Positions 6,304-52,700 of a stretch of 64,000 bases of DNA are shown here, piece after piece. This DNA comes from Phallusia mammillata (lineage: Eukaryota). A model generated the notes under the pieces. The model was not told the origin of the DNA and did not search any database. It was given only the letters and a program-made list of their open reading frames with translations. The stretch lies in assembly GCA_965637545.1 (NCBI GenBank), contig OZ281498.1:10354001-10418000 (forward strand), in the 5' to 3' direction. A program made the position numbers and the translations under genes. Position 1 is the first letter of the stretch. Every line of letters begins with the position of its first letter.

Positions 6304-7785
6304 TCATCCCTCCTCGAGAAACTCGGAAGGGGGTGGGGGTAACGCTGCTTCGCCCCCTTCGGGATATTCCCCAAGGTCAATGCCGTCTTCGGACGACTGA
6401 CCGCTTGTATGACCACCGCTGTCACTAAATTGTCTGTTGAGTCGCGCTTTGTCCACAACATCAAGAAGATTTTTGACGTCGATCGCGAGAACTTGAGTGG
6501 CAGCCATTAAACCTGGAGGCAAAATGACATTGTTTTAAGTTTTTGATTGTTGTTGCCAGTACAGACGATGCTGGTTAATAGCAATCCGCTTAACCATAAG
6601 TTCCGTTTTATTGCATACCAATTCTTAACCCCTGTAGCTTATCATTGCTTACAAACAAAAATGTAATGGTTAATCACAAGAACAGCTTGGCGAATTGATT
6701 TATTTATTGAGTTTATTTGTGATTTATGATGGTCGGTAATGGAAAAAACACTGTGAACGTTTGGGACTTAAATGCGTGCTCTTCCATTGGGCAATACAGT
6801 GGTGAACTGACTGCATTGGTCAAATCCATTAATTATAGTATAGATTAGTTTCATAGATGTGTCCATAAATTCGCAATGAGCCAAACAAAATAACCTTAAA
6901 AACCTTAAATTATTGACTTCAAAAGGTAAAAACATTGATATTAGAACTTACATTTTTTGTACTCGGTCACTTGAGTGGTTGTGTAAAATCGTTTGACCAA
7001 TTTCATTTGGTTGATGATCTGGGATAAATCTTTGTTGGTGGTTTTCTGTGCCATGTCGATCTCTCGGTGGTTCTCTCCAGGCAGCGAAGCCATTTCCTGG
7101 TCCAGACTCGTGCAGAGTTCCTTCAGCGCTTTGCCGATTGACTGTGAGGTAAAATGTAATGCATTAGGTGGGAATATGAACAATATTGTTAATATATTGA
7201 CTTGTGTTTTATCATCTGAAATATTATAACCTGAAATGTTGTCTTAAGACATTGAAAATGTGCAAACAACTTTTTTGTCGACATTACCACATTGGCAAAT
7301 ATGTTTAGTTAGTTTTTTATAAGCACAAAATGCAATAATTTCTCACTGTTTGGGTAATCAAAAAGCCAAATAAATGTAATGTTAAAAATGTAAGCCAGTA
7401 TTTTTGAGAGACTGTTTTTTGTCATGAATTGTTGAAATTAAAAGCGTCAATTATCCAACAATACATTGACTTCTAACTAAACATATTTATTATCCAAATT
7501 TAGGAAACATACGTTGTCATAATTCTTAAAAGCATATTTTTTTGTCATAAAGCATATTTATACATTAACAATCTTTTCTTTGTGGTATGACCTTTCATCT
7601 TTGAAAATTATTTTAGCAGAGCTAATTACCTTCACGAGAATAAATATATCGTCTGGTTGTGCGTTCATCACTTCCTGATTGGCTTGCAACACCGACTTCA
7701 CCACATTCATAGTATCCCTGTACACAGCATCTTTACTTCGATCAAGCTTCATGGTAGGGGTGGGTTTCACTTCCTCAAGGGTCAA
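6304..7785 (-). CDS. PTK2: FAK FAT-domain exons (7630-7785, 6952-7141, 6304-6512 including stop)
   Basis: [25 protein letters not shown] / [16 protein letters not shown]...HREIDMAQK / [24 protein letters not shown], followed by an acidic, Pro-containing tail. Confidence 0.94.
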
Positions 7786-49700: not shown

Positions 49701-52700
49701 TGTCAAGACTCTTTGAGCCGTCAAACTTGGGTGACTCATGCCTACCGGAAATAGAACGGAAGCCAGTAGGGCTGGGCCTCAGCGTGCTCGCACTGCTACT
49801 GGTACTTAAAGTGGGATATTTAGGTCGCTTTCGCAGCAGACTACCCGGGTAGTTACTGTAGTTGGAAAGGTTCACGCCCATGCTTGTGTAGATAGAAGCT
49901 TCGTCGTCCGCGTCCTGGGCATCGTCAAATCTTGAAAACAGATTCGGGTCGCTTGCGTTCCTGTGTGACAACGCTAGCGATGAGGACGACGAATCAGAAG
50001 CCAGAGCCGCTCTGATTGGCTGATTTGAATTGTCCTCCGCGCCTGATTGACTCGCAGAAGATGAGAGCGATGACCGACTGCTGTTATTGCCTTCGTAGTT
50101 CATGTAGACATTGGCTTCATTATCAAGGTCATCGGTCGACTTCCAAGGTCGTGGTAATCCAATGCAATCAGCCAATAGCTGCTGTTTTACGCTCGACCTA
50201 CGCCTTGGTAACGTACAAAAGTTCCCTGCAGAGCTCAGGTCCATATACATATCCTCATCGTCATCGTCATGCGATGTACTTGCACCTTTTGCAAACGTTT
50301 CATTTTCTACTGGGTCGCTCGAATCTACCTGGTCTTCTTCTGCCAAATCGTCCAATGACTTGCAGGATCTCCGACGAAAAAACTTTGCGCCGAACGAAGG
50401 TTTCTTTTTAACCCTGGCATAAGCGGGCATTGGCTGTTTAGGAGAAGTTGCCATATTCGCTAAGCCAAGTCGCTATAATAATGCAAAAAAGTTCATCTAC
50501 GCAAAACACTGTTTAAGTTAGTAACTAAAAATCTCAACACAAACTTTTACTGAACGAAAAATTTAAAAGTCAACGAGAGCAGTCACTGTACAGGTCCTGT
50601 AGTGCACTGACGTCACGAACACTTTCAAGACAAGTTCCAATTTGGATGTGGGGAACGATTTTGAATAGAAGGAAACGACCTGAAGAAGTTGAAACGAGAC
50701 ATGGCCTGTGGTTTGCCGAGCGAATAACCTCATAACATCCGGCCACGATCTAACACAGTTTATTTGCCTTATTTCCTATGCTTGGTTAATGCGCCGAAGA
50801 CAAGATTACCGCGCTGTGACAATTAACCTGAATGTTGTCATATAAATAACAACATTATATACATTCACTCTTACAATAGGGTTTTGTGTATGTTTGCAAA
50901 TTGATCAAGGAAAAGCGTGTTTTTTGAATAACTGTTACAAGTCTTCGAAATACAAAAGTTTTACTGCAAAAACTGTTTCCAACGATGTGAATAATATGCC
51001 CTACATACAGAAAAACACCAAGTTATGTAATCAACGCTTGGTATGTGACAGATTTCAGTTTTACCGTGAACACAAAAATCAGTTTTTATGATAACTGGCA
51101 GTACGTCCATTTCTCGCCTTCCAACACTAAAGTTTGGAACAAAACCAATAACCATAGTCGAGAAAATATCCAATACGCAAATAGGTTTTCTGGAATAAGG
51201 GATAGTGCGTCAATACCACAAGGAGAGCTTTAGTTTGTGAAGATTGAGGGAAGAAGTTTGTCATAATAGTCATTTTATCATAGATTTAGCAACCACACTC
51301 AAAATGAAGACAACAATATACCAAAAACGCTTCTTAGGGCATTGCTAAAATTCCTCACATACAAAGCATGTGCATTCTAAACAAATTCGCCATCTACGCT
51401 GAGAACATTATAACGAATGGAACAAATAGGCCATTAACCGATATCGTTAAAGCTAACGAGGTGATACCAGCAACACCATGTGAAAGTCGTGAAATTTAGA
51501 ACACGTGGGCTTCGGTTTTCACAACTCGATACCGTAAAACAAGCTCCTGTTATTTTTATGTCGTGTCGGGCTCGTTAAGTGAACTCGAGACACGTAGAAG
51601 GGCGGACAGCTTGTGGGCGGATGCTGTAACGCGAGCGCAGGTTTAACTGCCGAAGACCGTCGCCTCTATGCCCGCCGGCAATCATTCGATCGCGATCGTC
51701 CATGCGAGGATACTAAGCAAATCATACAGACAGACGACATCAAGACTAAAACTAGGCTTGTATATAACCAAGTGTACAGGTTGAACATGGCATGTGGTTG
51801 TAACCTTAAAATTGCGAATACGGCTTTAGATCCACAGTAAAGAAAGATGCGTTTGGTGTTTATAAGGAGCTGATAGAATGGCAATTCACACGTATAGGTG
51901 GCGAAATTACGGACGACCTCAAGACTATAAAGCTAGGCTGGTATAGAACCAGGTGTTCAGGTTCAACATGGCGCGGGGTTGTGTCATTAAAACTGCGAAT
52001 ACGACTTTAGACCCACAGTAAAGAAAGATGCGTTTGGTGTTTATAAGGAGCTGATAGAGTGGCGAGTCACGCATATAGGTAGCGAAATTATGGAAACGGA
52101 ACAACACCAAGACTAAAGCTAGGCTGTTACAGAGTTGCAAGTCGGGCCGGGCTTTTCGGGCCGGGTTCGGGTTCGGGCCGGGTTCGGGCCGGGTTCGGGC
52201 TTAGGTATTTGTGAGAAAACGGGCTTAAAACGGGCCTGACTTTACGTTCCGTGCCCACCATTGTTTTTTAAATAAAATCACTCAGCTAAGCAACAATTCT
52301 CTGGCTTTGACCTAATGTCCACCCTCCTCTGAAACTATGTATTGTTTGCCCCATTGTCTACTATTGTTCATTGTGTTTGTTGTCTTTCTCTTCTTTCTCA
52401 TCCTTTGTTGCAATGGTTTCGTGGATAGGCCTGTCAATCAAAATTTCGGGCCTAAACGGGCTTTGCAAAAACGTTTCGGGTTCGGGCCGGGCTTCGGGTT
52501 TATACTTTCGGGTTCGGGCCGGGTTCGGGCTCAGATTTCGGGCCCGCTTGCAACTCTGGGCTGTTACAGAACCCGAGTATTTAACTTACATGGCATGTGG
52601 ATATAATCATTAAAAATGCGAATACAACATTAGATCCATAGAAAGACACGTTTGGTACTTAAACAAGCTGACAGTATGACAATACCCACATGCAGGTAGC

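Follow-up and report, generated by a model that had tools for sequence, protein, structure and literature searches.

FAK is controlled by autoinhibition through its FERM domain and, in vertebrates, also by the kinase-less competitor FRNK. The FAK/PTK2-like gene of the ascidian Phallusia mammillata raises the question whether one FAK locus can hold several private coding front ends, since an earlier note had described three intronic ORFs (A, B and C), each reading in frame into a successively shorter part of FAK. Coordinates given here are positions in the window, the 64,000-nt stretch of P. mammillata contig OZ281498.1 that was analysed; the gene is on the minus strand. The ORFs were located as claimed (A, 50472-48093; B, 21995-20250; C, 11320-10968), and the sequence confirmed their donor phases of 1, 2 and 0. 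We favour, with a probability of about 0.65, the reading that A, B and C are conserved, lineage-specific alternative start exons of FAK, which the dominant mRNA omits.

The FAK gene and its ordinary mRNA

FERM, the Y397 motif, the tyrosine kinase and FAT are present in this order, FERM being represented within the examined sequence by its last exon alone. This exon (61278-61168), as read from the sequence and its ORF, has a phase 0 acceptor and a phase 0 donor (GCT/GTAAGT; a slash marks the exon boundary). The Y397-type motif ETDDYAEI is at 48135, kinase motifs including WMAPE lie between 47549 and 38108, and the C-terminal exons match Pfam Focal_AT (E 2e-6). An LRR-Ig gene is nested here on the opposite strand.

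RNA contigs of the ordinary mRNA (2.1-5.1 kb, from four studies) join 45219-45335, 45755-45855, 46236-46332, 47508-47599 and 48093-48141, and then jump to 59.7 kb. The first four of these segments are kinase exons (in gene order 47599-47508, 46332-46236, 45855-45755 and 45335-45219, the ends carrying a 1-nt aligner ambiguity), whose joints were found in all four RNA runs. The last is the canonical Y397 exon of 48 nt (48140-48093), present in contigs of runs X1, X6, X10 and X12. Its acceptor, ttttcctctcgcAG, with the AG at 48142-48141, falls within ORF A and is conserved in the related loci L001 and L002. At 48141 the contigs have a loose end that aligns to 59722-59693, within the FERM-kinase linker exon (59821-59692; 43 codons plus a G, phase 0 in, phase 1 out), which the RNA thus identifies as the source of the phase 1 donor into the Y397 exon. 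Pairing of the internal acceptors at 48141 and 48161 with the FERM donor was ruled out by phase.

An N-run assembly gap (44816-44955) lies inside the intron 45218-39408. The RNA contigs join 45219 directly to 39406, with NFVHR/DVAARNILV continuous over the junction, so the gap belongs to an intron of the kinase region that splicing removes; order and strand do not change over it, and no ORF of A, B or C is touched. The remaining kinase exons (39407-39307, 38148-38059, 37566-37422 and 36997-36938) are predictions from frame and GT-AG logic, RNA showing just the start of the first (39406). The last predicted kinase donor, CTCAG/GTTTGT, is of phase 2.

The post-kinase exon (19449-19383; phase 2 in, phase 0 out) is followed by the shared C-terminal exons, which extend from 10351 to 6304. 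These comprise the PTRPG exon (10351-10196), a coiled exon (9785-9651), one ending at 8834, and the FAT exons identified by Pfam Focal_AT (approximately 7785-7630, 7141-6952 and 6512-6304, the last including the stop). Phases in this model fail to close between 9651 and 7785, where a small exon is probably missing, and the product sizes predicted below are therefore approximate. The 3′ part of the ordinary-mRNA contigs is only about 2300 nt long and has no room for the 1746-nt exon B. The dominant FAK mRNA omits exons A, B and C.

Exon A extends the Y397 exon

Exon A (50472-48093) has an AG acceptor at 50474-50473, an 18-nt leader, an ATG at 50454 and a phase 1 donor at 48093. Its frame is open from 50472, and the ORF starting at the ATG (50454-48061) codes for 797 aa. 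Roughly 771 of the codons are new and are followed by the Y397 motif, the frame running without a stop into the donor G/GTAAGC at 48093, which joins 47599. In the window, in L001, in L002 and in the homologue P0003, exon A passes into the 48-nt Y397 exon without a break and in the same frame. The ordinary 3′ splice site, with its pyrimidine tract and AG, doubles as conserved codons of A (..RxS[FL]P..).

A search of 1.8 billion cluster representatives gave three matches to A (P0001-P0003), long ORFs sharing the same C-terminal ending, for which Pfam returned no match. The contigs that carry P0001 and P0002 (L001 and L002, respectively) have kinase exons downstream of A. A scan of JGI metagenomes for A returned one locus (L008) from the same species as L001 (99.7% identical); all that it added, a 1-nt homopolymer difference 54 nt above the A ATG, is weak evidence.

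The earlier note had A as a replacement N-terminus of FAK. A does possess its own ATG and reads in frame to Y397; since the FERM exon and the linker exon lie upstream, it is not simply the N-terminus of the gene. The junction 48093 to 47599, proposed in the same note as a mark of A transcripts, is present in the RNA contigs, but there it is part of the ordinary mRNA, whose Y397 exon has 48 nt. RNA from the body of exon A was represented by a single 202-nt contig (50227-50428) of run X1, which had a depth of 2.8, as against 43 for the main mRNA, and which stops short of 50472.

Exons B and C follow the kinase

Exon B (21995-20250, 1746 nt) has an AG acceptor at 21997-21996, an ATG at 21940 followed by a second at 21928, 563 codons counted from the former, and a phase 2 donor, CG/GTAATG. 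The CG together with the T of the exon at 19449 would make a CGT codon. The exon was found in six species (the window, L004, L005, L006, L007 and L009), with a Met start in each; of these L009 was the one further species locus given by a profile search, which returned no named or FAT-bearing protein. An exact-sequence look-up of ORF B in a contig index, from either Met, was negative. The post-kinase exon is conserved 3′ of B in L004, L005, L006, L007 and L009. All six B donors are of phase 2 (CG/GTAATG, CG/GTAATT, GT/GTAAGT, GG/GTACTA, GG/GTAGAT and GG/GTAAAA), and as the ORF in L006 continues 5 codons beyond the donor, the conserved end of B is the donor and not a stop codon. DNA similarity between the window and L004 is confined to 21954-20245 and 19465-19361; the intron and the segment 21995-21955 have none.

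Transcription of exon B is sample-specific. The share of its sequence words found in RNA was 1.00 in run X5, 0.56, 0.55 and 0.30 in X15, X16 and X17, which are from the same study as X5, and 0.00 in nine other runs.

Exon C (11320-10968) has an AG acceptor at 11322-11321, an ATG at 11246, 93 codons and a phase 0 donor, ACG/GTAATT, fitting the exon at 10351, which begins with PTRPGFP. An in-frame stop lies at 11288-11286, 13 codons above the ATG, and the relatives have one 12, 8, 7 or 6 codons above it. C is present in five species (the window, L005 of Clavelina, L006, L007 and L009), where the proteins are identical from the MKM start; upstream of the start no similarity was found across the five. 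The donor reads GRVxKKx/GTAA in all five, in phase 0, and the tails beyond it differ. The length of C is within the chance range for an open frame, yet the exon is conserved.

The three exons are coding and tied to FAK

Conservation of the ORFs in frame and in splice phase in relatives, which the earlier note had set as a check, was borne out: A was found in four species, B in six and C in five, always in the same order within FAK, and pN was below pS. The proteins are 30-60% identical across species. Over A, B and C pS was 0.71-0.83 and pN 0.27-0.42 (0.27 versus 0.71 for exon B against L004); these values are reported instead of dN/dS because synonymous sites were saturated in four of the five pairs. 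The order B, post-kinase exon, C, PTRPG exon and FAT is kept in L005, L006, L007 and L009, and the phase 2 donor of B and the phase 0 donor of C fit the next shared exon in the window as well as in 4-5 further species. Judged by this conservation, A, B and C are genuine coding exons tied to FAK. Their low-complexity composition, their predicted disorder and the absence of Pfam, atlas or PDB-type family matches might speak for frames that are open by chance, or for insertions in decay, for instance remnants of transposons. This notion is refuted by the conservation: the frames are intact in 4-6 species despite saturated synonymous sites, pN is well below pS, and motif blocks are invariant. B is, moreover, transcribed, and the stop-free runs reach 803 codons in A and 609 in B, as against at most 249 in block-shuffled windows.

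Little of the encoded sequence is predicted to fold. AlphaFold gave a mean pLDDT of 38.6 for A, and for B one long helix (residues 92-148, approximately 57 residues, pLDDT 85-95) with the rest below 50. Pfam had no match for any of the three, and in the ESM Atlas A and B retrieved low-score disordered proteins without a family. The earlier description of these regions as rich in tyrosine motifs was overstated: tyrosine makes up 2.5% of A and 2.0% of B, C has a single one, and the conserved motifs are few (EDxYxDL and YTxM in A, YAVV[KR]K in B).

Start exons or internal exons

Two arrangements could connect such exons to FAK. In the one that we prefer, an AG acceptor would be followed in each exon by a short leader, a private AUG and coding sequence that is mostly disordered, and the exon would end on a donor fitting the next FAK exon in phase. 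In the other, A and B would be giant internal exons of full-length FAK in some tissues and would supply disordered inserts, not new N-termini; A would then be mutually exclusive with the 43-codon linker exon, and B a symmetric cassette in the kinase-FAT linker. The window taken by itself is compatible with the internal arrangement. The phase 0 donor of FERM fits the A acceptor at 50473, from which six codons are open to the ATG, and in L001 the frame of exon A is open for 54 codons upstream of the ATG. Exon B is of phase 2 on both sides and matches the last kinase donor (CTCAG/GT), and its frame is open for 18 codons from the acceptor and for 48 codons in all above the ATG.

Comparison with relatives speaks against it. 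Above the B ATG five relatives have in-frame stops, at 3, 8, 11, 13 and 25 codons, which come after any upstream acceptor. Above the A ATG an in-frame stop is found 6 codons away in the window and only 2 codons away in L002, where the one available AG, a weak one, lies 4 nt above the ATG and has no pyrimidine tract. The upstream AG is separated from the A ATG by 18 nt in the window and, in L001, by 10 nt (0 versus 1 modulo 3), so the phase of the A acceptor is not conserved. Similarity of both DNA and protein begins at the ATG or about 14 nt before it, and no DNA or amino-acid similarity extends from the acceptor to the ATG. For C the internal arrangement is impossible because of the stop at 11288-11286.

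In the protein databases no entry was found that combines A, B or C with the complete C-terminus of FAK. The searches with B covered proteins of 0.55-1.75 times the query length, a range that a product of about 1650 aa with B as an internal exon would have escaped; the search with A had no length limit, and among 1.8 billion cluster representatives no long FAK containing A was present. In the P. mammillata RNA no joint of B or C to a FAK exon was seen, reads having been examined for A only. The conserved ATGs, the upstream stops in relatives, the varying acceptor phase and the conserved donor phase together favour start exons over cassette exons, and we regard the internal arrangement of A and B as unlikely.

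A further explanation makes A, B and C independent genes nested in FAK introns, with their own transcription and polyadenylation and no splicing to FAK. Nested genes do exist here, as the LRR-Ig gene on the other strand illustrates, and a TAA right at the B donor in four of six species would permit a free-standing protein. In the automated annotation of Clavelina, B figures as an 'unnamed protein product' of its own. Two independently produced models of the same annotation favour a link to FAK exons: one consists of B plus the post-kinase exon (P0005), and the other, of 428 aa, combines C with Focal_AT. These models were built by funannotate/EVM with introns capped at 8 kb (PMC10950049), a limit that forces the gene to be split, and they do not amount to transcript evidence. 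The 10 kb upstream of Clavelina B contains no kinase exons, from which it follows that the intron 5′ of B is longer than this flank. Independence of A is contradicted by its frame, which in all four species continues over the canonical acceptor and on through the Y397 exon, meeting a stop only past the shared donor. For B and C, similarity ends in every species exactly at GT donors phase-matched to the next FAK exon, and the read-through tails vary (5 codons for B in L006, 3 to 30 codons for C). Strand and order inside FAK are, moreover, fixed in all species. We consider independent genes improbable.

A model for the candidate start exons

If A, B and C are start exons, transcripts would begin at them either from intronic promoters or through spliced-leader (SL) trans-splicing, the latter using acceptors that lie 18, 55 and 74 nt 5′ of the AUGs in A, B and C, respectively. 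Leaders as short as these agree with SL addition without proving it. Such 5′-truncated transcripts would be spliced to the shared FAK exons. Exon A, a 5′ extension of the Y397 exon, would give a product of about 1400 aa with approximately 770 new residues, Y397, the kinase and FAT and without FERM, which might escape FERM autoinhibition. Exon B, placed between the last kinase exon and the post-kinase exon, would contribute 563 new residues to the whole C-terminal linker and FAT (900-930 aa), and exon C 93 new residues to the proline-rich part and FAT (400-440 aa). Both of these products would be kinase-less and may compete with full-length FAK in the manner of FRNK. The terms 'de-repressed kinase' for the A product and 'FRNK-like inhibitor' for those of B and C, used or implied in the earlier note, are interpretations of predicted proteins.

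A bolder version, which we hold to be doubtful, would have a single FAK pre-mRNA give rise to four proteins without separate promoters, addition of the SL to the acceptors of A, B and C competing with cis-splicing. Besides full-length FAK, one pre-mRNA would then supply a constitutively open FAK that has a built-in docking scaffold with several motifs (EDxYxDL, YxN, YTxM and an LD-like helix) in place of FERM, together with two adaptors that bear FAT, of which one might dimerise through its long helix.

Under the start-exon reading ascidians appear to have fixed three private coding front ends at two points of FAK, before Y397 and after the kinase, and isoform-level control of FAK would go back further, and be more elaborate, than vertebrates alone suggest. 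Conserved exon A could serve as a natural experiment in which Y397 and the kinase are retained and FERM is exchanged for a 770-residue disordered docking region; the FAT modules bearing a long helix or an LD-like helix could serve in the same way. The locus also offers a case of dual-use sequence, in that a canonical 3′ splice signal serves at the same time as conserved codons of exon A. For annotation, the consequence is that such exons are missed or split away as 'unnamed' genes.

Comparison with known FAK isoforms

In FRNK the leader exon is non-coding, and translation starts from a Met inside shared FAK sequence. The predicted products of B and C resemble FRNK, and PRNK of PYK2, in being kinase-less, in consisting of C-terminal linker and FAT, and in that their transcripts would start in a post-kinase intron. 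They differ in that FRNK has no private N-terminus, whereas B would add 563 conserved private residues including the helix of about 57 residues and C would add 93, and in that FRNK represents one kinase-less start as opposed to the two nested candidate starts of the ascidian locus. The intron that holds exon B separates the last kinase exon from the ILE[ED].. exon, and the latter would correspond to the vertebrate exon with the FRNK start. The B intron seems to be positionally equivalent to the intron of the vertebrate FRNK start; on the bolder and doubtful version given above, an internal kinase-less start may predate the tunicate-vertebrate split. In chicken and mouse the FRNK promoter and leader exon occupy the intron that separates exons 22 and 23 (PMC1570463).

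The closest counterpart of exon A is the human brain FERM-less FAK transcript BC028733 (Corsi et al. 2006, PMC1570463), which begins in the intron immediately 5′ of, and contiguous with, the Y397 exon (exon 15) and has an in-frame ATG in the former intron, its predicted product lacking FERM and retaining Y397, the kinase and FAT. Exon A likewise extends the Y397 exon at its 5′ end and carries an in-frame ATG. In BC028733, however, the extension is 135 nt long, codes for 20 residues from an ATG in non-canonical context and has been reported from human and macaque alone, whereas that of A codes for about 770 residues and is conserved across ascidian species. Neuronal FAK+6,7/+28 illustrates that alternative coding sequence beside the autophosphorylation site alters its regulation (PMC1570463); unlike A, these are vertebrate internal cassettes of 6, 7 and 28 residues in FERM-containing FAK.

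As regards the way in which such transcripts could arise, short isoforms of C. elegans sma-9 are reported to be produced by alternative SL trans-splicing (PMC2904332), and by analogy a 5′-truncated FAK mRNA might be obtained from an internal acceptor of a long pre-mRNA in an organism that has a spliced leader. A literature search for ascidian FAK isoforms found nothing relevant. The earlier statement that no FAK gene of this design was known to have been described has to be qualified, as the design has precedents in FRNK and in the human FERM-less transcript (PMC1570463).

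The FAK gene and its dominant mRNA

Exon reading and Pfam showed that the minus strand of the window carries a FAK/PTK2-like gene. The last FERM exon (61278-61168, read from the sequence, donor phase 0) precedes the 130-nt exon of the FERM-kinase linker (59821-59692; phase 0 in, phase 1 out), which ends in SRRDGLMS. FAK kinase sequence motifs lie between 47549 and 38108, and Pfam's Focal_AT matches 6522-6307, all on the same strand. Between 8834 and 9651 the phases of the exon model do not close: the coiled exon has its donor at 9651 (phase 0), FAT1 has its acceptor at 7785 (phase 0), and the exon ending at 8834 contains no pyrimidine-rich acceptor inside its open frame. 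It is likely that the model lacks a small exon or that an acceptor is unusual.

RNA contigs of four runs, one from each of four studies, were aligned to 45150-51149. In all four runs long contigs, of 2131, 4006 and 5140 nt at depth 8-43, joined the segments 45219-45335, 45755-45855, 46236-46332, 47508-47599 and 48093-48141. Beyond 48141 they left the aligned stretch, and the loose end corresponded to 59722-59693, within the linker exon. The dominant FAK mRNA uses the acceptor AG at 48142-48141, inside ORF A (50454-48061, minus strand), an ATG ORF of 797 aa. The exon carrying the Y397 autophosphorylation site is only 48 nt long in this mRNA, the remaining 2.3 kb of ORF A being spliced away as intron. 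The junction 48093>47599, by which the earlier note wished to trace isoform A, was seen in RNA; it is the common FAK junction and is no evidence for that isoform. In the contigs of runs X1 and X10 about 2300 nt lie downstream of 45219, which agrees with about 1400 nt of further canonical exons and a UTR; the 1746-nt exon B cannot fit. Short contigs with many loose ends (word depth up to 90, all four runs) cover 46550-46950 in a kinase intron and look like an expressed repeat rather than a part of FAK.

The assembly has an N run at 44816-44955. RNA contigs ending at 45219 go on with sequence mapping to 39406-39377, and the coding sequence across this junction is continuous (..NFVHR/DVAARNILV..), thus the gap lies in a spliced-out intron. 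Order and strand agree on both sides, and none of ORFs A, B and C is touched. Just below the gap (44559-44749) one 33-residue translated stretch is present twice, which suggests a tandem repeat as a possible cause of the gap.

The FERM-to-Y397 intron harbours, on the plus strand and head-to-head with exon A, an LRR-Ig gene (54201-58468; LRR_8 repeats, Ig / I-set and a transmembrane stretch, by Pfam). Upstream of the A homologues there is an Ig gene in loci L002/L003 and an LRR_8 gene on the contig of protein P0003; with the same neighbour in this position, the nesting is conserved. The interval 50472-54200 could be a shared divergent promoter. Just past the 3′ end of FAK two adjacent plus-strand ORFs of 231 and 386 aa (3443-5392), both matching RVT_1 in Pfam (profile positions 2-84 and 108-204), represent a retroelement pol gene broken between them.

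Conservation and expression of the intronic ORFs

ORF reading confirmed that all three ORFs of the earlier note exist where it had placed them: besides A, the open stretch of B occupies 22072-20246 and C extends from its ATG at 11246 to 10968, both on the minus strand. The stop-free runs of A and B (803 and 609 codons) compare with at most 249 codons in block-shuffled windows. Among 1.8 billion cluster representatives, searched without length limit, A had exactly three relatives: P0001 (45% identity), P0002 (32%) and P0003 (36%), long single ORFs on contigs of other species, which all finish with a common 10-residue end. Kinase exons follow the A homologue in L001 and L002, the contigs of P0001 and P0002. 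Five further species have relatives of B (L004, Clavelina L005, L006, L007 and L009), and four have relatives of C (L005, L006, L007 and L009). One B homologue is annotated in Clavelina lepadiformis, which points to an ascidian as the probable source of the window. Since L009 and L001 derive from one sample, A, B and C occur together in one relative species. The order B, post-kinase exon (19449-19383), C, PTRPG exon (10351-10196), coiled exon, FAT is kept in every sufficiently long contig.

In comparisons of the A, B and C homologues synonymous sites were saturated (pS 0.71-0.83 versus pN 0.27-0.42), and B gave a dN/dS of about 0.15 against L004. At the DNA level the window resembles L004 over 21954-20245 and the post-kinase exon only, and not in the intervening intron. 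The frames are kept and pN is below pS; judged by sequence comparison, ORFs A, B and C are coding.

All 31-mers of exon B were present in RNA run X5 (share 1.00), with shares of 0.56, 0.55 and 0.30 in three further runs of the same study and 0.00 in nine runs from three other studies. X5 contains just 0.03 of the mostly intronic A stretch, so its exon B signal is not DNA contamination. Transcription of B is sample-specific. For A, the four runs aligned to 45150-51149 yielded a single 202-nt contig (50227-50428, depth 2.8, run X1) and no other sign.

Predicted junctions with FAK exons and the probable nature of the 5′ ends

In each of the four species A directly adjoins the Y397 exon. Inside the A frame a canonical pyrimidine tract and AG are kept, reading ..ttcctctcgcAG/AAACC in the window, ..cccttcctcttacAG/AAACC in L001 and ..ttttcccacctgtttAG/AAACA in L002. 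This accounts for the conservation of ..R[RK]S[FL]P.. in A, a dual-use sequence. Splice phase, a check asked for by the earlier note, is conserved. B donors are phase 2 in six of six species; in L006 the ORF continues five codons past the donor, hence the conserved feature of the B end is the donor and not a stop codon. C donors, phase 0 in five of five species, follow immediately after GRVxKKx, and the read-through tails behind them differ between species in length and sequence. In the Clavelina annotation (funannotate/EVM, maximum intron length 8 kb; PMC10950049) one model joins B to the post-kinase exon and another, of 428 aa, joins C to the FAT exons. These models are an independent automated reading, not transcript evidence. 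Protein databases yielded no protein in which A, B or C is joined to the complete FAK C-terminus.

The main rival holds that A and B are in-frame internal exons of FAK in this species. For A, the phase 0 FERM donor is compatible with entry at 50472 when the linker exon is skipped, and B is symmetric (phase 2/2) and shares the phase of the last kinase donor (CTCAG/GT). Against this stand stops above the ATG in relatives, acceptor phases that are not conserved and similarity that starts near the ATG. In five relatives in-frame stops lie 3, 8, 11, 13 and 25 codons above the conserved Met of B, the window alone being open further upstream (48 codons), and similarity to L004 sets in 14 nt short of the ATG rather than at the acceptor (21996). 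For A, the stop above the ATG is 6 codons away in the window and 2 codons away in L002; in L001 the frame stays open over 54 codons. A pyrimidine-rich AG precedes this ATG at distances of 18 nt (window) and 10 nt (L001) that differ in phase, and L002 has just a weak AG at 4 nt, without pyrimidine tract. Such variable-phase acceptors slightly above a conserved AUG look like 5′ UTR or spliced-leader acceptors, not coding junctions. L001 and L008, assemblies of one relative, differ by one T (position 10079 of L001) in a T4/T5 run situated 54 nt before the A start codon; the difference shifts the upstream open frame, which speaks weakly against this stretch being coding.

C cannot be an internal coding exon, because an in-frame stop (11288-11286) lies between its sole good acceptor (11322-11321) and the ATG. 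In the five species the distance from the ATG up to an in-frame stop is 13, 12, 8, 7 and 6 codons; the proteins agree from their first residues (MKMSVGV, MKMSLDF, MKMPADA, MKMSTDV), and there is no similarity upstream.

Overall, the comparative evidence leans clearly towards start exons over internal exons. The earlier note's proposal that the ORFs swap the N-terminus of FAK is partly supported and is, with a probability of roughly 0.65, the best reading, with C the strongest case, B the next and A the weakest. Conserved coding, ATGs and donor phases speak for it.

Predicted features of the encoded segments

No Pfam family was found in A, B or C, and no atlas family for A and B. For A, AlphaFold on a shallow alignment predicted disorder over nearly the whole length (mean pLDDT 38.6), apart from two short helices, WYKEKCDKF and a 12-residue stretch at 48538-48576. 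B was predicted disordered save one confident helix (residues 92-148, pLDDT 85-95). Invariant blocks of A include RxCKSxD, EDxYxDL, TxPRRxSSVK, YTxMxxN, PPLxxSNxSS, CCSPTR, LxKKLGxYxFWKP and WYxxKCxxFxYxIP; those of B include PSPATS, the helix, YAVVxK, FKxKLK, SKDS and GDxxxSxRSTDxS. Tyrosine shows no enrichment, at 2.5% of A, 2.0% of B and a single residue in C, and of the claim that the segments are rich in tyrosine motifs only the conservation of a few motifs stands. Those in A include YxxM and a partly conserved YxN, which might serve as SH2 docking sites.

The A helix at 48538-48576 (block pLDDT up to 83) resembles the paxillin LD motif (LDxLLxxF), and the best-conserved part of C is a stretch at 11160-11200. 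If these two elements bind FAT, focal-adhesion targeting could be masked or redirected.

Comparison with known FAK isoforms

Literature searches found no papers on ascidian FAK isoforms. In human and macaque brain, the transcript BC028733 has its start within intron 14 and runs on directly into exon 15, which carries Y397; an in-frame ATG located 60 nt before that exon predicts a FAK that lacks FERM and gains 20 residues (PMC1570463). The predicted architecture of exon A is the same, but with about 770 conserved codons in place of the 20 residues. FRNK, the kinase-less vertebrate product, is transcribed from a promoter in the intron that separates exons 22 and 23, and its leader exon is non-coding (PMC1570463). 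In position B and C resemble FRNK, but in place of a non-coding leader they carry private conserved N-terminal sequence.
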